64,000 nt of DNA from Octopus sinensis (lineage: Eukaryota): positions 12,710,001 to 12,774,000 of the forward strand of contig NC_043007.1 in assembly GCF_006345805.1 (NCBI RefSeq), in the 5' to 3' direction. A program made the translations under genes and the position numbers. The notes below the pieces were generated by a model that searched no databases, was not told where the DNA came from, and saw nothing but the letters and a program-made list of their open reading frames with translations. Positions 6,981 to 63,685 of this stretch are shown here, one piece after another (the stretch's first letter is position 1; the number at the start of each line of letters is the position of its first letter).

Positions 6981-7226
6981 CATCTCACTCATTCTTATTG
7001 AAAAGAGCATTGTTGCTGTGAGAACAATTACGACCCATGTAATCTGTTTTTTACATTTTTCTTGCCCCACCCCACCACCACCAACTTCACTTTGTAAATG
7101 AACAATCTGGTGTGTTTATTTTAATAGCCTATCAATGTATACAGTGAGTTTCTGTGCCCTGAGTGTTGGGAAGACACTCAACAAGAAAAGGCAATCTGAA
7201 AGTTGGAAGAGGAAAAGATCACTATC

Positions 7227-7259
<33 letters not shown>

Positions 7260-7260
<1 letters not shown>

Positions 7261-8275
7261 TAAAAAATTCCAAATTTCTGGCACAAGGCCAGCAGGTTTA
7301 AGGGTGGGGTTGGTTGATTACAGAGACACATTGCTTTATCAAACCTGAAAGGGTGAAATGTAAAGTTGACCTGACGGCAAACTGGCAGAATCGTTAGCAC
7401 GCCGGGCGAAATGCTTAGTGGTATTTCGTCTGCCGCTACGTTTTAAGTTCAAATTCTGCCGAGGTCGACTTTGCCTTTCATCCTTTCGGGGTCGATTAAA
7501 TAAGTACCAGTTACACACTAGGGTCGATATAATCGACTTAATCCGTTTGTCTGTCCTTGTTTGTCCTCTCTGTGTTTAGCCCCTTGTGGGTAGTAAAGAA
7601 ATAGGTATTTCGTCTGCCGTTACGTTCTGAGTTCAAATTCTGCCGAGGTCGACTTTGCCTTTCATCCTTTCGGGGTCGATTAGATAAGTACCAGTTATGC
7701 ACTGGGGTTGATGTAATCGACTTAATCCGTTTGTCTGTCCTTGTTTGTCCCTTCTGTGTTTAACCCCTTGTGGGTAGTAAAGAAATAGGTAAAGTTGACC
7801 TCACTGACATTTGAACTCAAAATGTAAAGAGCTGGGAGACATGTAAAATATTTTGTCTGACATGCTAACATTTCTACCAGCTTAAGCATTAATTTGTGAA
7901 TGAGTGGACATAACCTAAATCTTTCAGTTTAAGCATTCATATAGTCAATTTCAACATTCTTTTGTCATTTTTATTTTTTCACTTTATTATTATTATAATG
8001 GGTGGATGTTGGGAAAATGGCCAGTATGGATGGACCAATTCTGAGATTACACCTGCAAAAAACAAAAGGTTTAAAAAGAGAAAAAGCTCTTGCCCTGTTA
8101 ACCAGACACTTGTGGCTTTTATGGGTTTTTCCATGAGTAACCTTTAAAGTGCCGCCTCCTATTGGGAGTTCTACTTATTACATTTTTTAATTTTGTTATG
8201 AAATGTTTACACGGACCTTTGTCTCGTGTTGTCCTTCAATGTTTTGATTTATGTTAGCCCTTGTGGCCCAAAAAG

Positions 8276-11829: not shown

Positions 11830-12240
11830 CAATAATAATAATAGCTTCTGATTTAGGTACAAGGCCAGCAAGTTTGAGGAGGAGGTGTCAGGTGATTTTA
11901 GCAACTCCAGTGCTTGATTGATACTATATTTTATTGACCTGGGAGGGATGGAAAGCAATGCTGACCTCAGCAGGATTTGAACTCAGAACGTAAAGGTCTG
12001 GAAGAAATATTGCATGGAACTTGGTGTGATTCTCTGATGATTCTGCAAACTTGCCACTTTGTATAATAACGGTGATAATAATGATTTCAAATTCTGACAC
12101 AAGGGCAGCAATTTCAGGGAAGTGGGGGGAAAGTCTATTGATCCTAGTACACAACTGGTATTTATTTTATCAACCCTGAAAGGATGAATGGTAAAGTTGA
12201 CCTTGGCAGAATTTGAACTCAGAATATAATGTAATATTAA
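11830..12240 (-). mobile_element. Two SINE B copies
   Basis: ggtacaaggccagcaag...gatttgaactcagaacg and gacacaagggcagcaa...gaatttgaactcag. Confidence 0.75.
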
Positions 12241-12419
12241 CAACAACAATAATAATGATGATGAAAATATTCTCAAGTGTATACTTCTGATGATCTATGA
12301 GAAAATTTAACATAACTCAAGCAGATCAGTTCCAAGCTGCCATTAAATATGAAATAAGTAAAAACTGATGTTGTTTAATTAGCTTATAGTACATTGTAAT
12401 TACAATGTACCGGATGTCT

Positions 12420-20789: not shown

Positions 20790-21165
20790 ACCCGTCCATT
20801 TAAATATAACCAATGGTCCTCTGTCTAGAATGTACCACCTTAACCACGTTCAGTCATGCAGCCCAGCGTCCAGAGGGTGAGCTGATTTGTGATGTCCTCC
20901 TCCCACCTCCCACTTCCCAGCTGGCGCAAACGCACGGGCGGGCAGCTGAAGACCTGGGCAACGACAATAAAGGAGGACCTCTCCAAACTATCAGGTCCGC
21001 AGGTGGTCGGTCTGCGCAGATGGAACTGCGAATGGCTCGCTATCTCCAGTGACCTCACACAGGACTGTCAATCGTGGGCCGCCATGGTTCGTGATGCCGT
21101 CAGGACCAGAGAAAAAGCCAGCTCAACCCGCCCTGGGTGAACGCCGTCACAAGTACAAAGAAATG
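20790..21165 (+). mobile_element. 3' end of an RTE-clade LINE (degenerate ORF2 C-terminus, CAAGTA tail)
   Basis: Frameshifted HAAQRPEGELI...WRKRTGGQLKTWATTIKEDL...LTQDCQSWAAMVRDAV...STRPG*, then cacaagtacaa. Confidence 0.8.
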
Positions 21166-23962: not shown

Positions 23963-24801
23963 AGAGGGTGATTAATAAACTGTTGTCTAAATTATGCAAA
24001 ATTGAAAATAACACTGACATCTCATTTTAGCAGAAATATTTACCAAAATTACATTTTAAAAATATCTTGAAATGCTAAACAGTAAATTTATTCAATAAAA
24101 TCGCCATTGGCTTCAACCACAGCCTCCAGACGACTTTGGAATCTCCTGCAACTCTTCTGGACGGTCTCCTTGTTTAAGTTGGTGAATACTGCCATAATCC
24201 TTGCCTTCAGTTCTTCTTTGGTGTTACAAGGAGTTTTGTTGGTTTCTTGCTCTACTATGCCCCACACATAATAATCAAGGGTGTTGCGGTCTGGGGAGTT
24301 AGGTAACCAGATGTTAGGGGTGATATGATTACAGAAATTGTCTGACAACCACGGCTGAGTTCTCCTGCTCGTGTGATATGGTGCAGAGTCGTGTTGCCAA
24401 ACATAGGGTCTTCCAGCAGCCACCCTCTTGACTCAGGGCAGCACTCCCTCCTCCAGGGACTTGATGGAGGCCTCCAAGTTGAGTCTGGAGGCATCACTTG
24501 TGATCACTCCAAACACAAGGATGTTGATTGGATGTTTGATTTTTATCACTTTTGGTACATGTCCTTAGACTGACACCCAAACACTCTGAACTGTTCATAT
24601 TGGAACTCCCAGTGCAAACGCCGAGTAGTACAGCATGTTGTTTCCAAATTTCTAGCAGAGTGAAATGCATCATGGTGCTGTTTTTTCTCACAGACAGTGC
24701 CCAACTGACCCTACTACACTGTGGGGTTTGCAAAATCAAAGACAATGCGCACGTGCAAAATTAAAAATATAAAATGGCAACAATTTACCCATCACACCTT
24801 A
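23963..24801 (-). mobile_element. Degenerate Tc1/mariner-superfamily transposon (maT/DD37D-like), internally deleted
   Basis: VFGVITSD...LP*VKRVAAGRPYVWQHDSAPYHTS...NIWLPNSPDRNTLDYYVWG...LEAVVEANGDFIE. Imperfect TIRs gggtgattaataaactgttgtc and ggcaacaatttacccatcacacc. Confidence 0.85.
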
Positions 24802-27530: not shown

Positions 27531-27757
27531 CAGTTTGATGTTTTACCACTTGCCAAACCGTTTCCTCGTGGTACTTTATTTAATTAAAATTTTGAAATTG
27601 TATATTTACGGAAGTAATTAGCAATTTCCAAAATTGTATAATGCTTTTTTATTCAGTTTCCAATTTCATATTTATAGCTTTTGCTTCTTTTGGTGGAGTG
27701 TTTTTTTTTTTCTACTTGCATTTTAGTAAATATTTATTTTCGTTCATTTTTGCTCAG

Positions 27758-27906
27758 GAATACTCACCAGAATTGCACAATATCACCAAAACAAAGAAGC
27801 CAACATTTGGTTCAAATGAAGGCATCACCATAACAGGTATCAAACACAACCGTGAAAGTTATGCTGCCAACTCAGACCATCCTCCGGCAGGATCCAATTA
27901 CCAAAA
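27758..27906 (+). CDS. PACSIN: PACSIN/syndapin exon immediately after the F-BAR domain (EYSPELHNITKTKKPTFGSNEGITITGIKHNRESYAANSDHPPAGSNYQK)
   Basis: Acceptor ttcatttttgctcAG, donor AA|GTAAGA. 149 nt, phase 0 to 2. EYSPEL...EGITITGI resembles the vertebrate PACSIN segment EWSADL...DGVTLTGI (recalled, not aligned). Confidence 0.9.
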
Positions 27907-36802: not shown

Positions 36803-37075
36803 CTAACTCGGATGCATGCAGTAACCTGATGGTTGCAGCCATCTTTGCCTGATCTTCTTGCTAACTTTCAGCAGGTCTCCATAAAGGCATCCATTTGTCA
36901 TATGTTGCTGCCATTTCACATTTAGGGCCATTTGTAGCATCCTTGTGGTGCATCCATTTAGCCCGTTTGATAACTTCATTGTCAGTGTCCATGTTTCACT
37001 GCCATATAATAATAGCACTGATTCGACTATGCAGCATTCCTTTAAACTTAGATATCCTGAAGACAAGGGAGCTTC
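36803..37075 (-). mobile_element. RTE-clade LINE ORF2 fragment (post-RT region)
   Basis: VESVLLLYGSETWTLT...TRMLQMALNVKWQQHMTN..LYGDLLKVSKKIRQR; YGSETWTL is an RTE signature. Confidence 0.85.
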
Positions 37076-37087
37076 ATTAGTTTTTAC

Positions 37088-37375
37088 AGGAGTGGCTGTG
37101 TGGTAAGTAGCTTGCTTACCAACCACATGGTTCCAGGTTCAGTCCCACTGCATGGCACCTCGGGCAAGTGTCTTTTGCTATAGCCTCGGGCCGACCAAAG
37201 CCTTGAGAGTGGATTTCGTAGATGGAGACTGAAAGAAGCCTGCCTTATATGTGTGTGTCTCTGTTTGTCCCCCACCTCCAACATCGCTTGGCAACTAATG
37301 CTGGTGTGTTAACGTCTCTGTAACTTAGCAGTTCGACAAAAGAGATCAATAGAATAAGTGCCAGGCTAGGCTTAA
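37088..37375 (+). mobile_element. SINE A
   Basis: Direct match to the family A head and body. Confidence 0.9.
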
Positions 37376-38588: not shown

Positions 38589-38819
38589 GGAAGAGCCACA
38601 GCGTGAGGACAAAAAGAATCCTTTTGATGAGGTGCCAGAAAAGGATCCGGCAGATAGCAAAGGGAAACAGAATGCCACTGTTACAATCGAGCAGAATGCC
38701 CCTGTCGCAATTGAGCAGAATGCCCCTGTCGCAATCGAGCAGAATGCCCCTGTCGCAATCGAGCAGAATGCCCCTGTCGCAATCGAGCAGAATGCCACTG
38801 TTGCAACCAAACAAAAAAT
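38589..38819 (+). CDS. PACSIN: Cassette exon with NPF and six 8-aa repeats (EEPQREDKKNPFDEVPEKDPADSKGK, QNAPVAIE-type x6)
   Basis: Acceptor aatttttttAG, donor AT|GTAAAA. 231 nt = 77 codons, phase 2-2. NPF at 38617-38625 is followed by acidic residues. Confidence 0.75.
38668..38811 (+). repeat. Exonic 24-bp minisatellite, 6 units
   Basis: Unit cagaatgcccctgtcgcaatcgag (QNAPVAIE). The four central units are nearly identical. Confidence 0.95.
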
Positions 38820-45898: not shown

Positions 45899-46597
45899 CA
45901 TATAATAATTTAAAGATTTAATTAAAATTTTGTAAAGTCCATTTTGTGTGTGAGTGTGTGCACGCACACTATAACTCCATTTTGCCACAACAGGACCAGT
46001 TACAAGTCGATTTATGGCTAAGCTGTTTATCTATTTTATTACCTGCTGCCTTTAAATAAATTATTCTCATCAATATGGATCAATACTGCCTTGATGGTAA
46101 CATCATATGAAAAATCTAAGATAGTGGTCAAGAATATGCAGTTTAATTTTGAAGTGAAATATTTATAGTTGACCTGAGAGCTAGATCTAAATGAGCAACT
46201 GGATATATTGGAAAATGGTTGTTAAAAATATCTCCTTAATCTGTGCCAAATTGGAAAAGCAGGGATGGAATGATATTTATTTCTGTAGTATAAATCAATG
46301 TTCTTTTGGAAGATGTCTTAAGATCCTTTTACACTTGGCCTGAAGCATGAACGTCCTGTGCTGATTAAGGCCATCCATCTTAAAATAGAGACTTTTGTGA
46401 ATGATGCATTTGTGATCAATGATAATTGTTTAGAAACAGATTTTGTGAATGCAAATTAAAAATGGAAAGAAAGAAAAAAAATGTTGCATAAGTGTTGGAT
46501 ATGCTTTTCCTTATATTGTCATACATAATGAAAGATGGTTGGGATTAAAGTAAGCAGTTAGATTAAGATTTCTGGAATAATTAGATTATACATAGAA

Positions 46598-47100: not shown

Positions 47101-48882
47101 AAGTCGTTCGCAAGACAAGAACCCTTGAATTAATCATAAACTAATAAAGCAGAAATACTGACCATTTTTCAGAACTGTAAATTAACACAATTCTTGCTAT
47201 ATTCTGCTTTGTTTCAATTCATTTTGAAAATAATAAGGAATTTAGTGAAATGACTGTTATTATTATTAAGTTGGTGTTTGGAACAAAAATTAACATGGAA
47301 TATTAATGAAAGCTTTTTGGGTCATTTTTAACAATGTAGTTTGTATTGTAGTACCAGGAGTGCTTCTCGGGTGATTTGATATCAGAAGGTTTAAGCAATA
47401 TTCAATCAAAATTTTATCCCTCCCTACCATTCCAATATAAAGGTAAGAAATAAGTTTCAGCTGTACTCATAAGTTGTCCTACTTAGGGAAAAAAAATAAC
47501 AAAAAAAAACAGTATAAACAGACAATGGTCTCTGAGCATGTTATAACTTATAATTTTACATGCATGAACTAAAAAAAAAAAGGTGGGGGAGGTGGGGTTG
47601 AACTAAGAGCAATTATCAGTTTCTCTGGTGTGAAGTAGATGAGAGACAAACGAGTCTATGACTAATTTTTATGGGCAACTTTCCCAGAGGAAGCTGATAT
47701 CCATTCTGAAGTTACATAAACTAATATAAGAATTAATAATTTACTCAGTGCTTCTGGTGAAATGTTTGTTGTACATTTAAACTCATGACTCATTAACAGT
47801 TGATACTCTGATATTTTATTGGTTTAGAAGAGAGTTATTGAAAATGATGAGTTTGTCAATATCTGCAAGATGGGTTAATCTAGTTTAATATAGATTTACG
47901 GTAGCAATAAGATTGTTTTCATTAAGTGGGAACAGCTAGGATTTTGTCCAACCCTTCATTTTATGAGTTTTTTGGGGGTTTTTTTTTTCTTGCAGTCACT
48001 ATTAAATGAGCAGTCTAGCAAAAAAAAAAGAAAATTGCTTTTGTATGTATGTGTATAGGATGGGAGTTAACTTTAGTGCAAAGATGTTTTTAGATCAAAC
48101 GTTGATTTACAACTAATTTTTGTGTATTAGGAAGGAAAAAACAAAATGAGAATAATGGTTTAATCTATCGGGAAAATTGTTATTTTGTCTAATCAGTTGA
48201 GCATCATGATTGGACTTTGTTTCTCTCGCCTGTTTTTTTATTATTTTTTTTTTCAAGTAATTTCATTTTATTTTCAGCTCTCATACAAAATATATTTCAG
48301 GTCCCAACAAATACATCATACTAAATTGTTTCTATTTATTTGTATGAATTTGATAAACAACACATGTATTTGATATTGTTTATTGATTTCTCTTTTTCTC
48401 CCAATTTTATTATTGTATTTTCTTGTGTGTGTTTGTGTGTTTCTTCTTGCAAAAGCAATCTAATATCTATTTATTTGTTTAATAACTATTGATTCTATAA
48501 ACGAATTGAAATTTTGGTGAGCTTTTTTTCAAACACACGAGGCGCTATTTTCTTGCCTTTTTTCTTTTTTCACGTTTGTTGTTTTTTGTTTTATTAATTC
48601 TCTCATCTATATTGCCCATACCTATCAGAAAAAATATCCTCTCAAAGAAACCTAACATCCACTTTAAAAAAAAAAAATTCTTGTTTTTTTAAAAATCTAA
48701 TAATTTATCTTAAAATGCATGGAATGGTGTGTGTGCGTGTTGTGTGTACATGTATGCGTGTGTGTTTGTTCAGTTTTACTTTGGCTCCACATTCCCTTCC
48801 CGCCAAAAATTAAAAACACAATACTTTTAGCTCTCGACTTCATTGAATTTGAACAGTCTTATAGCTCCTATACCTTTTATAG

Positions 48883-48990
48883 GCAAGAGAGCTACGATGA
48901 AAGTCTCAATCCTTTTGGAGAGGAATCTGACGACGAAGATATACATAGTGATGCTAAACATTTGGTGAAAGATGCATCTCAAAAGAAAAA
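48883..48990 (+). CDS. PACSIN: Linker exon with acidic NPF motif (QESYDESLNPFGEESDDEDIHSDAKHLVKDASQKK)
   Basis: Acceptor ccttttatAG, donor AA|GTAATG. 108 nt = 36 codons, phase 2-2. NPFGEESDDED resembles PACSIN2 YNPFEDEDD (recalled). Confidence 0.85.
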
Positions 48991-49516
48991 GTAATGATAG
49001 GTTTGCAGTTCAGTGTCTATAATTTAAATTACTAAAAAAACATTTTATTTACTGCATCTTGGCATGAAATGAAAGTTCCTGTCAACAACATACCTCTTCC
49101 TATGCAGACTTTTGCCATTATAGATTAGACGGGCTCTTAAAAGAAAAAATAATAATAAATTAAATTAAATTAGAATTTTTCTTCTCAGCTCTTCAGTTTT
49201 AGTTCTTCTGAAGTGGGGGGGGGTATGATTTTCTAGCTTAGTACAAAGAAGAAGAAAATTCTTTAATTTAATCCATTCTTATTTTACAAGGAGCTGATCT
49301 TTGAGCTTACACAACACTAACAGACTTTCTTCAGGTTGTTTGTTACAGCCGATAGATTATTAAATGATTCTTATCTGGATCACTTAATAATTTACAGGAT
49401 TGTGTAGGTTATATGATTAAAATAGCAATTGTTAACATGAAATTGAAATTTTTATATCCAATCGTAGCAATGATGTTTTCTAAGTCCTTTGTTCCTTCCT
49501 CTATTTACCTTACTAG

Positions 49517-50384
49517 CTCACCCAGGCAGAAAGGACCTTTGAACACTGGCATAAAAATCAACCCAACTACTCAGTCACCCGCAGGTATGGGGCCTCAAGG
49601 ACGGGGTGCTGGACCAGCTAAATTTGGAATGGATCCACGTTCCCATGTTTCAAGTCCCCGTGGCATGAGACCACCAGGTATGGGTCCAGCTGGCATGAGA
49701 CCACCTGGTATGGGTCCACCTGGTATGGGTCCACCTGGCATGGGTCCACCTGGCATGGGTCCAGCTGGCATGAGACCACCTGGCATGGGTCCACCTGGCA
49801 TGGGCCCACCTGGTATGGGCCCACCTGGTATGGGCCCACCTGGCATGGGCCCACCTGGAATGGGGCCACCTGGTATGGGTCCACCCGGAATGGGCCCACC
49901 TGGTATGGGTCCACCTGGCATGCGACCACCAGTAATAAATGAGCCAAAAGTAAGTCCAGGAAATCGACGTGGTAGCATGACACCACAACCCCAGGGTCCA
50001 CCTAACCCAATGATGAGACCCATGATGAATCAAAATGCACCTACAATTCACATAGAAGAGAGGAGACCTAGCTCTCCATCGCCGATCCCAACCAGAAAGA
50101 ACCAGTATAGAGGAATACCTGATAACTTTGACCAAGAAATTCGAGACATGATACTTGGGAAACCTGCTGGAGGTAACAAAGGAATCGGTGTCAACAGAAA
50201 TATAAACACTCCAAATAAGAACCTGAACAATAATAGGAGCCCTATGCATCAATCCTCTCCATATATAGACAGCCGAAAAGGATCAACTGACTATGGAGTT
50301 TTGAACAGATCCAACACAGATCAGTCGATTGAGGGTTATTATCGCAGTGTTGAAACCGAGTCCTTGTCTGATTTCTCTGATTGA
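49517..50384 (+). CDS. PACSIN: Large Pro/Gly/Met-rich exon with 18 x GM(G/R)P(P/A), ending in TGA; would give an SH3-less isoform
   Basis: Phase-2 acceptor tttaccttactAG|C TCA CCC, in frame with the 323-aa ORF 49413-50384. The frame stays open to TGA at 50382-50384. A donor CAG|GTAGGT follows at 50394/50395. Confidence 0.7.
49662..49931 (+). repeat. Exonic 15-bp minisatellite, 18 units (GGY ATG GGN CCA CCT)
   Basis: 270 nt = 18 x 15. Unit variation is mostly at third codon positions. Confidence 0.95.
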
Positions 50385-50766
50385 TCTCTACCAGGTAGGT
50401 ACGATCCTACACCCGCCCCCACCACAGGCAGTTAGCTAACTTCCCATTGTTGTAAACCTGTATCAGTTGTTCCATTTGCACCGCTCCAGATCTGACCTTG
50501 CAAACAAACAACATCAGTACAAACCAAGACTCGCCACCCCCCCACCTGCTTTTACCTACAGTCACAACAGGGTTACCACGTGCCCTTATTTTCCATCGTA
50601 CTTTCTCTAAGGGATTTGCTTCAGACTGTTATTTATGAATTTGTGTCGGGAGGTGGGGAAAGATACATACATACATATATATGTGTGTATGTGTATATAT
50701 ATATATATATATATATGAATATTCACAAATCTGGTTGTAGCTAATTAATTTAAGAGCATATGCATG

Positions 50767-50798
<32 letters not shown>

Positions 50799-52999
50799 AT
50801 ATATAAAAACACAATGTTATTTCTTATCATGCTTATACAATAATCTTTTTACCCTCAGGTCTGTTTTCCTCTAACCGTTTTTGTTGGTGAAATTCAATAT
50901 CACTCATGAATTATAACACTGTGCAGTTAAATTAACACAAATTTATGCTCAAAGACTAACAAAATAACGACGTTCGTTAAGGTTTTCATCTTAATATATT
51001 TAGTAGGGAGTGTAGGTACCTTAAATTTTGTACAGGGGCTCATCTGACTTTTGCTTACATTCTCTATAACCCCAGGTAAGGCTAGGTACACCTTGGTTCA
51101 TCTTTAATGTTTCCTCAGATTCACGACTTGCATATCATATGCAATATGTAATATAAGGTCTTTCCTTTTACAATTTACTGAAATTACTGTTACACATTGT
51201 ATATAAGCTTAGCTTTTAGACAGACAATATATTTTCTTAGTCCGTTAACATTCAGACTAGTTTCAAAATCTTATGCTCATTCACATTGTCTTGTAGCTTT
51301 GGCATTTCAATGATGTGATTGTTTAGTTTAGAATGACATTGTCAGGTAAGTGAGAGAAGTTAGATCTGGTCAGTTTCAACCTAAAACGGACAGAATATTT
51401 TAACCTGATATGGCCCGCTTAAATGCCAAAAAGTTAATAAAATTCAAAAAGAAGGAAGCAAGCACCTGTCTCTATATTTATTCTTCATCAGTTTGTATTC
51501 TACCTGTCCTATATATAAACTTGTAGAATGTAGAATATTTGCTTAAAAATATTAAATGATTATTTGGACTGTTTCCTTTCTTTAAATAAGTTGGTTAATA
51601 TCAATGTTTATCATTATCTATTATGTGGGATTTTTTTTCCAAATTTCACTTAAAAGAATAATTTTCTGGCTAGAAGAGTTCCTAATTCATTTTATAGCAA
51701 TCAACCTAAAATATCTGCATAGGAATGGCTATGAAGAGCAGGTTCCTTTTTGTTATTCCCAAAGATTTTATATAGCCGCTTTCTGTCCAAATTTTAACCA
51801 TTAATTTCTCTCCGTTGATTTCATTTTTCTTTTCCTTTTGTCATCTGTTTGTCTAATTTGATCCGTCTTTCCTCAATCTGATGCCATGACAGTTGCAGCC
51901 AGTGCATGTTGCTATTTGCTCGTTTTTGAAACTGCATGCAACACCTTTTTTTATTTTTCTCTCTTTGATTCTTTTATATCTTCCTTATTTCCTTCCTTTC
52001 TTTTCATCTTTGTAATTCTTCTTTGTATTGTCAGCTGTCTGAAAAGCTTACTGTTATATTTTATAACAAGCTTGCAAATATTTTCCATTCAGGTCTAAGG
52101 TTTAGGTTATTTTCATGTACGTTTTGTCATATCATTGATAACACATATTAATATGATTTTGAATTTAAAAAACAAACTCTGCTTATTTGAATTTTGAAAA
52201 AAAATTGTGTTTTGCAGGGAAGGGGAATTTTTCTGGTTTTTCTTAATAGCATTCAATCATTTTTTATTTTCTACCTGACTTGTAACTATAACACAACAGA
52301 TGGAATGAAACTATTGTATTACTTGAATCTTGTGGATTTTTCTTACAACCATTAGTCTAACACTGAAGGAGATAAGGACCTGTTACACCAGACACACACT
52401 CATTTGATCATTTTTATGCCTGTTTTTTCCATGCTAGCATGGGTTGGACAGAAGTTTATTCAAGACAGTAGATTATAGTTAGACACATTCCCTGTCACCA
52501 GCCATTACTTGTCTTTCAAGTAAGGGTGTTTTTGGGGGTTTGCTTGTTTTTTATTTTTATTTTTTTATTCTGCTGGTCTTTGAAAACACTGAGCAACAGG
52601 ATGTATTGTCAATGGGAAATGCAAACATTACATCACTGTATTATTCAGACAGTGACCAGTGAGGTCAAGAAACATCAGCATTTGTACACACACACACACA
52701 CACACACACACGTATACATACTTAGATAAACTAATTTCCATATTTGTTCCTGTCTGACAATTCACAAGGCATTGGTTGGCACAAAGCTATATTTGAAGAC
52801 ACTTGCCCTGGGTGTCCTACAATGAAATTGAAACCATGTGGCTACAAAGTGAACATAAATATATTCATTTATTAAGGTACATGTCCTAGTGGTTAGGTTG
52901 TTGCACTCGTGTTTTCACAAGATGGTGGTTTTGATTCCTGGACTAGGTGGTGCTTTGTTGTTCTTGACCAGAACACTTCATTTCAAATTGCTTAATGAC

Positions 53000-55600: not shown

Positions 55601-56295
55601 TTATTAAAATGTTGTACAAAATGCCTTGTGGTATTTAGTTACAGCTCTTTACATTCTCAATCCAAGTCCAACTAAAGTCAAACTTCACATTTCATCCAAT
55701 CCTAATCCTGGGGTAAATTTAATCAGTTAATCCGCTCTCTGCTTAAAAACTTGTGGCTTTGTGCCTTCTGATTTTAAGAAACTGAAAGAAAAAAAAAATT
55801 TGTAACTCAATAATTTGAACAGTTAATAATGTCTAAATCTTCATTATTGTTTCAAAAATGTAAAAGAGAAAGTTCTGGAAACCACCATTACTTCTAATTC
55901 CCTTCTATTGCACAGCTATATATATATGTGTATGTCTATATATATATATATATATATTATTACTAGAATCAGTGTGCTTTATATGTTTGTATATTCAATT
56001 TTTTTGCATTTATTTTAATGTCGTTCCTCCATGTCGCTTTGCATGTGATTTTCTCAACCATTTTCCTTTATTTTTTTTCTTCTTTGTATCCTTTATATGC
56101 ATGTTTTCCTTTGAAAATCCCTGTGTTTTTTCTGTAGATTTAAGGGTATTTTTTTTTTCTTTCTAAATCTTCATTATTATTTTTTTTCTTCTTCTTTCCA
56201 TTTAAAAAAAAAAAAAAAACTTGTTGCACTCCTTGCTTCTTTTTGTCTCCCTGTTGCCACAATTCCACCACCGACTATTTCTGTTAACTTTGCAG

Positions 56296-56579
56296 TGCTG
56301 AGACTGCTGACAATCATAACCCTGATTCAATATACTCCAGCTCAACATACGTTGCTCCTCCTCCTTACTCTTCTATTACTGCTCCTACTACTACCACTAC
56401 CACTACTACCACCACTACTGATATCAAAGATGCTGATGGTAGGAATCCGTTTGGTGACCCCGACAGCGATGATTGGCTTGACGACACAACATTGGTGGAT
56501 GATAACCGACCAGGTGTGCCAGTGCGCGCTTTATATGATTATAGTGCAACGGCTCCAGATGAGCTGACTTTTAAAGCAG
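56296..56579 (+). CDS. PACSIN: PACSIN exon with PPPY, poly-Thr, NPF and the N-terminal half of SH3 (GRNPFGDPDSDDW...VPVRALYDYSATAPDELTFKAG)
   Basis: Acceptor aactttgcAG, donor G|GTGAGC, phase 2 to 1. ALYDY and DELxFKAG are SH3 signatures. This frame is missing from the ORF track and was translated by hand. Confidence 0.95.
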
Positions 56580-59795: not shown

Positions 59796-59912
<117 letters not shown>

Positions 59913-60463
59913 AAAAACACTTAGATAATACGCTAATATAGCCCTTTTATTATCACACAAGACCTTTTTTGCCCTGACCTGGAGTATAATATCAAAACTG
60001 GAAAAAAAAAAAATTACACATTAACATTGAATATCTGTATAATCCTTCTCATGGTACCGATTATAGCTTCCCTTGTCTGAAGAACTATTGTGCAACAACC
60101 ATATCTATAGCTTAACGTTTCACACACACACCCACACACACACACACACATCAACACGGTCAAGAATTGACAGATTCCTTGTGACTTTAGTCCAGTGTTG
60201 GACCTTATATCCAATATTCCCACTGAGTCTGTTTTTAATGATAACCAAATTGGTTTGTACGTCATTGATCAAAGTTCAGGATGTAATCACCGTGAACTGT
60301 AAACCAATTTAGAATTGATTCCACCTTCTATCAGTTATTGATAGTTTCCCCTTTAGATTATTGGCAGAAAGGTCACTACTTTTAGTTCAAACAGTCCAAC
60401 TACAGTAAATTTCCTACATGGTATACATGTCCAAGGGGGTAGGGGAATATTAAACAGAATTTT

Positions 60464-60492
60464 ATATGTGTGTATGCATGTGTGTGTAAGTG

Positions 60493-60531
<39 letters not shown>

Positions 60532-60799
60532 TTGCATATTTGTGTATGCATGTTTGTATGTATACATGTAAGTTTGCATATATATATATGAGTGCATGTG
60601 TGTATAAGTGTATATATGTATGTTTGCATATATCTGTGTATGCATGTTTGTATACATGTAAGTTTGCATAATATATATATATGAGTGCATGTGTGTTTAT
60701 ATATATGCATGTATGTGTATATGTTTGTGTATGTGTCTATATATATATATGTATGTTTCCATATATCTGTATGCATGTTTGTATGTATACATGTAAGTT

Positions 60800-60835
<36 letters not shown>

Positions 60836-60921
60836 TGCATGTGTGTATATATGCATGCGTGTGTGTGTGTATATATATATATATATATGCATGTATGTGT
60901 ATATATGTTTGTGTGTGTGCC

Positions 60922-60953
<32 letters not shown>

Positions 60954-61020
60954 TACATGTATATATATTTATGCATACATGTGAATGCGTGTATGATATA
61001 TCTATATTGCTATATATATA
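60464..61020. repeat. Compound TA/TG/CA microsatellite with higher-order units, in the putative 3' UTR
   Basis: Recurring gtatgcatgtttgtatgtatacatgtaagtttgcata(ta)n tgagtgcatgtgtg blocks at about 60540, 60640 and 60770. Confidence 0.9.
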
Positions 61021-61422: not shown

Positions 61423-62394
61423 TGGTATTTTATCAATCTACGTCTTTTTTTTTTTTTTTTAACTTCGTTTTAATTAATTGTAGTTGATTATGTTAATTAA
61501 AATCCTTTTTTTTTGTCTTTTTGCACACAGAAAGTGCGAACCACTATTTTTCAATTCCCAAAGACAGCCTCGTTGTTGATATTTTTGTCACAAAAATGCA
61601 AAAGTTCATATTTTGATTTTTATTTCGTATTATCTAAAGCTATAAGACGATGGCAAAGTTGCAGAACTATTAACACGCCAAGCCATATGCTGACAGGCAT
61701 TTCATTTGTCCTTATGTTCCGAGTTCAAATTCCGCCAAGGTCAACTTTGCTTTTCATTATCAAAATTGCTGGCCTTGTGCCAAAATAAGAAACCAATATT
61801 ATCTGAAGCTATATAAGCTTTTTGTTTGTTTTTGTTTTCCTTTGAAATATTGCTATATTTTTTTCATATCTTTCCTTCCTCCTCATTGTTCTCTTCACTT
61901 AGTGGAGCCTTAATAATCAACATCCAACCTAATTATTCAGAAGTAGATATTAATTAAGCAATCTGTTAAAATTACACTCTACTTCCATTGGTAAATGCTT
62001 TTTTTTTTTTTTAAGAATTTAAGCTAATTTCATAAGTTTAATTTATATTATTTAAAATATTTTACGCACACACACACAACTATTTCAAGCATTACCTCCT
62101 CTTACTTTTTTTTCTCTATTTTTAATATCATTTTATTACGGAGCTGATAAGAGAATCTCTGAAATCTGCCCAGATTTTTCTTTCAGCCAAAATCTCCCAT
62201 CAGTATTGAATGGAGTTATAGTTATCTCCCTTGTATATTTTGCTATTCCGTGATTTCCCTTCACTGCAAATTTAGTCACTCCATCATCCACTTTTATTAC
62301 TATCAGCCTTTATATATTTTTTATAAAATCAAACAAAATATTGTAATAGATTTTCTTAAAATAGTATGGAAATTGATTTTATAGACATATATAA

Positions 62395-63455: not shown

Positions 63456-63685
63456 TGTGGCGAGCTGGCAGAATCGTTAGCATTCCAGACGAGATGCTTG
63501 GTAATTTGTCCATCTTCGTGTTCTGAGTTCAAATTCTGCCATGGTCAGCTGTGCCTTTCATCCTTTCAGGGTTGATAAAATAAGTACCAGTTGTGTACTG
63601 GATGGGCGGGGGGTGAGGGCAATGTAATGGGCTTACCCCCTCCTCCAAAATTGCTGGCCTTGTGCCAAAATTTGAAATCAATATT
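63456..63685 (+). mobile_element. SINE B
   Basis: gtggcgagctggcagaatcgttagc...aaattgctggccttgtgccaaaatttgaaa. Confidence 0.85.

Follow-up and report, generated by a model that had tools for sequence, protein, structure and literature searches.

PACSIN/syndapin proteins share an architecture in which an F-BAR domain is followed by a linker with NPF motifs and a C-terminal SH3 domain. The SH3 domain keeps the F-BAR domain autoinhibited, serves to recruit dynamin, synaptojanin and N-WASP, and links membrane curvature with dynamin and actin. In mammals, splice variants of PACSIN2/syndapin II are distinguished by an NPF-containing linker cassette, and we know of no described PACSIN isoform in which the SH3 domain is exchanged for a long P/G/M repeat tail; a literature search for cephalopod work on PACSIN or syndapin gave no relevant result. 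As for the P/G/M-rich sequences themselves, PPG-Phi (Phi being a hydrophobic residue other than Trp) is the ligand of Smy2/GIGYF-type GYF domains (PMC10187677), and the SmB/B' tail, which carries a PPG signature, recruits the GYF domain of CD2BP2 and the WW domains of FBP21 (PMC11412891).

The locus described here resembles the PACSIN/syndapin family in that the host gene combines a PACSIN linker exon and NPF motifs with an SH3 domain that is C-terminal and complete, and in that cassette exons of one phase make up its linker, a design to be expected where linker splice variants occur. It differs in its PGM-repeat tail, which is without relatives outside cephalopods in the searched collections. 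All coordinates refer to the window, that is, the whole 64-kb stretch of Octopus sinensis DNA that was analysed, and a slash within a splice-site sequence marks the exon boundary. A preliminary description had placed the PGM exon inside a PACSIN gene, and we found it there, on the sense strand between the NPF exon and the SH3 exons.

Exons of the host PACSIN gene

The most 5' PACSIN exon that we identified, at 27758-27906 (+), is the linker exon just 3' of the F-BAR region (EYSPELHNITKTKKPTFGSNEGITITGIKHNR...), which was found by tblastn with the PACSIN C-terminal fragments P0063, P0101 and P0117 (matches at 27755-27853). It codes for the post-F-BAR PACSIN segment (EYSPELHNITKTKK...GITITGI) and has a phase 0 acceptor and a phase 2 donor (CAAAA/GTAAGA). 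No F-BAR exon was detected in 1-27700 of the window by motif scan or by sensitive tblastn with F-BAR-containing fragments, and that domain is therefore placed upstream of the window. A further linker exon is the NPF exon at 48883-48990 (+; QESYDESLNPFGEESDDEDIHSDAKHLVKDASQKK), which matched a mollusc-like PACSIN fragment (P0060, SYDESLNPFG), has an alternative acceptor at 48865 and ends at a donor, AAAAA/GTAATG, that leaves two codon bases. Downstream lie two canonical exons, the first of which, SH3 exon A (56296-56579, +; acceptor phase 2, donor GCAG/GTGAGC phase 1), encodes a poly-Thr run, the third NPF motif and the first half of the SH3 domain and is matched by 120 PACSIN/SH3 proteins. The last one (59806-59912, +) supplies the second half of the domain and a TGA stop. 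Spliced together, 56296-56579 and 59806-59909 give a complete Pfam SH3_1 domain (1-48/48, 45.3 bits), and of the 140 protein matches to the SH3 exons, those that carry a name are PACSIN ('protein kinase C and casein kinase substrate in neurons') or antigen EG13. With NPF motifs at 48908 and 56444, two marks of a PACSIN gene were found in the window, namely a linker with NPF and a C-terminal SH3 domain of PACSIN type.

Between the first two of these exons we identified a 231-nt candidate cassette exon with phase 2 at both ends, at 38589-38819 (+), from its sequence, its splice sites (tttttttag/ and /gtaaaa) and weak tblastn matches to the NPF region. It codes for EEPQREDKKNPFDEVPEKDPADSKGK, with a further NPF motif at 38617, followed by 5.8 copies of a 24-nt repeat (QNAPVAIE), which Tandem Repeats Finder located at 38668-38806, and may be one more alternative PACSIN exon that bears repeats. 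In SH3 exon A, an uninterrupted run of 11 Thr (APTTTTTTTTTTTDIK; 56380-56420, +) stands just before the last NPF and is possibly an O-glycosylation or phosphorylation tract, or a simple codon repeat. A second open frame at 56115-56564 (+; 90 aa, Leu/Thr-rich) nearly spans the same exon and is probably a by-product of its ACT/ACC repeat composition.

Elsewhere in the window, three ORFs (24088-24423, -; 20889-21140, +; 36803-37126, -) resemble, by eye, transposase or reverse-transcriptase tails of mobile elements, with no Pfam match at E<=0.01. A dispersed short repeat, translating as ...NSAKVNF(T/A)(I/F)HPFRVDK... or ...CAFHPFRVDKISTSCVL..., occurs on both strands at many sites (examples at 7116-7400, -; 11983-12276, -; 61674-61910, +; and 63505-63624, +) and is presumably a SINE-like element. 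Long TA/CA/TATG-type microsatellites occupy intronic sequence at 50660-50810, 3' of the PGM exon, and at 60400-61000, past the last exon.

The PGM exon and its constraint in cephalopods

The PGM/PPGM-repeat coding exon spans 49517-50384 (+), including its TGA stop at 50382-84. A split codon (N) takes its third base from position 49517 and the reading register starts at 49518, so that the exon comprises this split codon and 288 full codons; the register beginning at 49517 was rejected, as the frame-1 translation runs into stops. The exon is preceded by a polypyrimidine tract and TAG acceptor (49478-49516, +; TAG/C at 49515-16). The ORF that contains it is, with 323 codons, the longest in the window (the runner-up has 159 aa), and the exon forms a GC island, with 47-63% GC against 25-36% in the flanks. 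Its core is an array of 15-nt units at 49661-49930 (+) that encodes P(P/A)GM(G/R), for which Tandem Repeats Finder gave a period of 15, 18.0 copies, 85% matches and a score of 351. Motif counts yielded 18 GM[GR]P[PA], of which the preliminary description had likewise counted 18, with four GMRPP, together with 15 PPGM. The kinase motifs RRGS, RRPS and RKGS and the several SP/TP sites noted there before the stop are also present, once each for the first three and ten times for SP/TP. Across the 18 units, minor bases numbered 22 at third codon positions, 6 at first and 1 at second, in agreement with the variation at third positions reported earlier.

AF2 predicted a disordered tail (mean pLDDT 50) with one short helix (206-212, QEIRDMI), which lies in the most conserved block, where pLDDT is highest (69). 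That block, RGIPDNFDQEIRDMILGKPAGGN (50109-50177, +), corresponds to invariant columns R198-N220 in the cephalopod copies and holds the sole predicted helix. At the end of the exon, the acidic, serine-rich C-terminus YYRSV(E/D)TESLSDFSD with its stop (50337-50384, +) is invariant as well, the stop being matched in all three relatives described below. Peptides of the tail include GIPDNFDQEIR and SVETESLSDFSD.

Three relatives of the tail were recovered: P0002, a stand-alone 279-aa gene model of Octopus bimaculoides (UniProt A0A0L8IC45); P0001, an ORF on Logan contig L002 from another octopus-like species; and P0003, an ORF on Logan contig L001 from a much more distant cephalopod, whose identity with the window tail is 40% by the best BLASTP alignment and 58% when the aligned columns in alignment A1 are counted. 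Both contigs are genomic, with the upstream intron present before the same acceptor, tag/CTCA(C/G)CCAG, in the same position and phase. A profile search with the last 129 residues of the tail against 1.84 billion representatives retrieved these cephalopod clusters and none outside cephalopods, and Pfam and PDB sequence searches with the tail gave no significant match; within the collections searched, the PGM exon is restricted to cephalopods.

Conservation is that of a coding sequence. Compared with L002, the exon is 92-94% identical and essentially free of indels, whereas identity is 87% in the upstream intron, where 432 nt contain 66 gap columns, and 90% in the 123 nt downstream, which contain 8. 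In 150 post-repeat codons, the Nei-Gojobori method counted 16 synonymous and 14 nonsynonymous differences between the two (dS 0.18, dN 0.041, dN/dS 0.22). In the more distant L001, 67 of the C-terminal 129 residues are identical to those in the window and 38 of these 67 (57%) are written with different codons, so the constraint is on the protein and not on the DNA or RNA. The blocks that are invariant even when L001 is included are NPMMR, SPSP, RGIP(D/E)NFD(Q/K)EIRD(M/L)ILGKPAGGN (the conserved 23-residue block, RGIPxNFDxEIRDxILGKPAGGN), SSPY, RKxS and YYRSV(E/D)TESLSDFSD-stop, RKxS being the only basophilic phosphosite kept there. About 450 nt of non-repetitive sequence 3' of the array is kept in frame across cephalopods. 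The array itself differs in length from one species to another (18, about 12 and about 9 copies), always by whole units, and the L001 unit is altered (GPRGAGVGPPGM, GPQGPHMGPPGM) with PPGM retained.

That the open frame arose by chance from a GC-rich microsatellite-like repeat, or is a fragment of a mobile element and hence no gene feature at all, might be suggested by the simple 15-nt tandem array at its core and by the empty Pfam and PDB searches. Against this, the post-array sequence stays in frame across cephalopods, the splice signals are conserved, the window has a single copy of the locus and a Pfam search found no transposon domains. Given cephalopod conservation, the indel-free exon, its dN/dS and the changed codons under identical residues, we regard such an origin as effectively refuted and scarcely conceivable. 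The protein-level constraint and the disordered, proline-motif-rich tail put forward in the preliminary description were thus both upheld, and we hold with high confidence that the PGM segment is a real coding exon under constraint.

Predicted splicing of the PGM exon into PACSIN transcripts

The acceptor of the PGM exon has phase 2, in common with those at 38589, 48883 and 56296 (SH3 exon A). Throughout the linker (27906, 38589-38819, 48883-48990 and 56296), donors leave two codon bases and acceptors supply one, so that, with all boundaries including 49517 in phase 2, any combination of these exons is in frame; judged by sequence, the PACSIN linker looks built for combinatorial splicing. Agreement in phase alone has a chance of 1 in 3. 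Joined to the NPF exon, 48990 to 49517, the PGM exon reads on in frame (aa/c; ...DASQKK-N-SPRQKGPL...), with the predicted junction peptide ...DASQKKNSPRQK. Because of its sense-strand place between the NPF and SH3 exons and its matching acceptor phase, which like the acceptor position is kept as far away as L001, the best reading, which we hold with moderate confidence, is that the PGM exon is part of an SH3-less PACSIN isoform; since its stop is conserved, a product spliced this way would be without SH3. In such an isoform, the NPF exon donor between 48990 and 48991 would be spliced into 49517 instead of 56296 with the frame kept, giving a protein composed of the F-BAR domain, the linker with NPF and a 289-residue disordered tail that ends at the stop at 50382-84, without SH3.

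The same exon could instead be part of a separate gene that lies within the PACSIN intron, with an internal promoter and a short first exon near 46.5 kb or in the intron immediately 5' of the PGM exon, which would encode a free, disordered PPGM-repeat protein of ~260-290 aa with no link to the F-BAR domain. The O. bimaculoides protein A0A0L8IC45 is modelled in just this way, from a 7-codon first exon (MKDGGGL) followed by the PGM exon, and a counterpart of that first exon with a good donor, ATGAAAGATGG...AAA/GTAAGC, is present in the window at 46529-46552 (+). The counterpart (ATGAAAGATGGTTGGGATTAAA/GTAAGC, about 46529-46552, +) is, however, interrupted by an in-frame TAA and reads MKDGWD-stop, so the mini-exon is not conserved as coding sequence; it could be a non-coding first exon. 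Octopus copies also have in-frame intronic ATGs just 5' of the acceptor, but these fall within the polypyrimidine tract, and in L001 the stretch from the last in-frame intronic stop to the acceptor is free of in-frame ATGs. Reading the hydrophobic intronic N-terminus MKLKFLYPIVAMMF as that of a secreted protein was likewise rejected, as it is a translation of the polypyrimidine tract with no counterpart in L001. The position of the first in-exon Met differs among three species, yet the region that precedes it is kept in frame despite a 4-codon length difference between them, and the acceptor phase is the same as in all PACSIN linker exons, both of which speak against the nested gene.

A nested gene would also be in keeping with the search results, in that no spliced PACSIN-tail protein was found in the collections searched. 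Word-index searches and an exhaustive profile search for transcript-derived homologues returned only P0001, P0002 and P0003, none of them spliced to PACSIN: all are genomic ORF calls (L001 and L002, with the intron) or the stand-alone model (P0002). A transcript-derived protein joining PACSIN and the tail was thus absent from 5.8 billion and from 1.84 billion proteins, but octopus PACSIN itself is missing from the same collections, so this absence weighs little. On balance, we see the nested gene as a possible, if doubtful, origin of the PGM exon.

How a transcript including the PGM exon would end is bound up with a strong 5' splice-site consensus, CAG/GTAGGT (50395-50400, +), that lies 10 nt past the stop and is identical in L002; L001 has AAAG/GT 11 nt past its stop, at the contig end. 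The first AATAAA on the + strand past the PGM stop is at 51436, 1 kb downstream. A donor 10 nt after the stop suggests that the exon may be an internal, stop-carrying cassette rather than a terminal exon. The PGM exon may thus be an internal cassette whose conserved donor between 50394 and 50395 is used, with the SH3 exons becoming 3' UTR, or it may be the last exon, in which the mRNA ends, with a long UTR. Of the earlier proposal that this exon ends the protein, the conserved stop stands, and the idea of a terminal exon has to be modified, as the strong donor hints at an internal one.

Two ways of rejoining the SH3 domain to the tail were considered and rejected. Up to the donor at 50394 the PGM exon measures 878 nt, which is not a multiple of 3. 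PGM repeats and SH3 in one frame could also come from the internal donors CAG/GTATGG (in the repeats) and GGAG/GTAACA (50173), but both have phase 1, so that SH3 exon A would be entered out of frame. Editing of TGA to TGG, or read-through, into the SH3 exons has no conserved frame to follow, and stop read-through is unsupported because the spacing from stop to donor is 10 nt here versus 11 nt in L001.

As a cassette, the exon would place a stop ~294 nt 5' of the last exon junction, an arrangement for which nonsense-mediated decay is predicted in vertebrates. This, together with the strong donor 10-11 nt past the stop in all three genomic copies, would suit a regulatory 'poison' cassette, whose inclusion puts a stop before SH3 and sends the PACSIN mRNA to decay, the tail itself being functionless. 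For that purpose the stop alone would suffice, yet ~290 codons are kept open, dN/dS is 0.22, protein blocks are invariant while synonymous sites are saturated, and the exact C-terminus is conserved. A pure poison-exon role is therefore unlikely in view of the protein-level conservation, and we consider it very improbable.

Candidate ligand motifs of the tail and their possible meaning

The preliminary description had likened the repeats to the PPGMRPP unit of SmB. This unit did not prove to be conserved, GMRPP occurring 4, 2, 1 and 0 times in the window, L002, O. bimaculoides and L001, and it is PPGM that is conserved instead (15, 8, 11 and 8 copies in the four species). The SmB/B'/N and PGM tails are alike in being disordered, C-terminal and P/G/M-rich with PPGM(R) units, but they share no sequence homology, the PGM tail having no PDB match, and their settings differ, an Sm core protein in one case and a cytoplasmic membrane-remodelling protein in the other. 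Another parallel is offered by partners of GIGYF1/2 such as TNRC6, TTP and ZNF598, as PPGM fits their PPG-Phi motif and is the sole repeat element kept in the four cephalopod copies. In the known partners the motif (PPGL, PPGF) occurs once or a few times, whereas the PGM tail is a 15-fold array. Within a region predicted to be disordered, PPG with a hydrophobic, non-Trp residue after it is found 15 times here as PPGM and 8-11 times in the homologues, and the conserved PPGM points, at the level of sequence, to GYF-type PPG-Phi recognition rather than specifically to the SmB/FBP21 type.

Two other motif classes fit poorly. The four PGM-tail arginines in a P/G/M context (GMRPP) recall the 'PGM motif' of CARM1 substrates, but they are not conserved across cephalopods, and a later map of CARM1 substrates confirmed the enrichment in proline and not that in G or M (PMC5458078). 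The CARM1 idea is weak because the arginine unit is not conserved and a role of G/M is unconfirmed. The classical SH3 ligands PxxPxR and RxxPxxP were rejected on inspection, as they misfit the repeat register.

If the PGM exon is spliced into an SH3-less PACSIN isoform, the product would be predicted to retain F-BAR dimerisation, membrane binding and NPF-EHD binding, and could heterodimerise with the canonical PACSIN form. It would forfeit SH3 autoinhibition and the recruitment of dynamin and N-WASP; with SH3 absent, the isoform would therefore be uncoupled from dynamin, synaptojanin and N-WASP. In exchange, the tail would add about 15 PPGM (PPG-Phi) motifs, of the type bound by GYF domains and by some WW domains, as well as two short linear motifs that are conserved and putative phosphosites for basophilic and proline-directed kinases. 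Binding to such domains, condensate formation and a dominant-negative effect, all raised in the preliminary description, are speculation. A fuller scheme can be drawn, in which a cephalopod PACSIN isoform produced by an alternative 3' exon has its SH3 domain swapped for a 15-fold PPG-Phi array and forms a multivalent platform on the F-BAR dimer, recruiting GYF machinery (e.g. the GIGYF-4EHP repressor or CD2BP2) or phase-separating at membranes or synapses, under regulation by the conserved RKxS/SP sites; taken as a whole, we judge this scheme improbable.

An isoform that gave up the SH3 reader for a multivalent ligand tail would mean that an endocytic hub had been rewired in one lineage, whose animals have unusually elaborate nervous systems, and membrane remodelling would be tied to GYF/WW partners otherwise known from RNA metabolism. 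Even if the PGM exon belongs to a nested gene, it defines a conserved, cephalopod-only family of disordered proteins, marked by a pair of invariant linear motifs and without known relatives.
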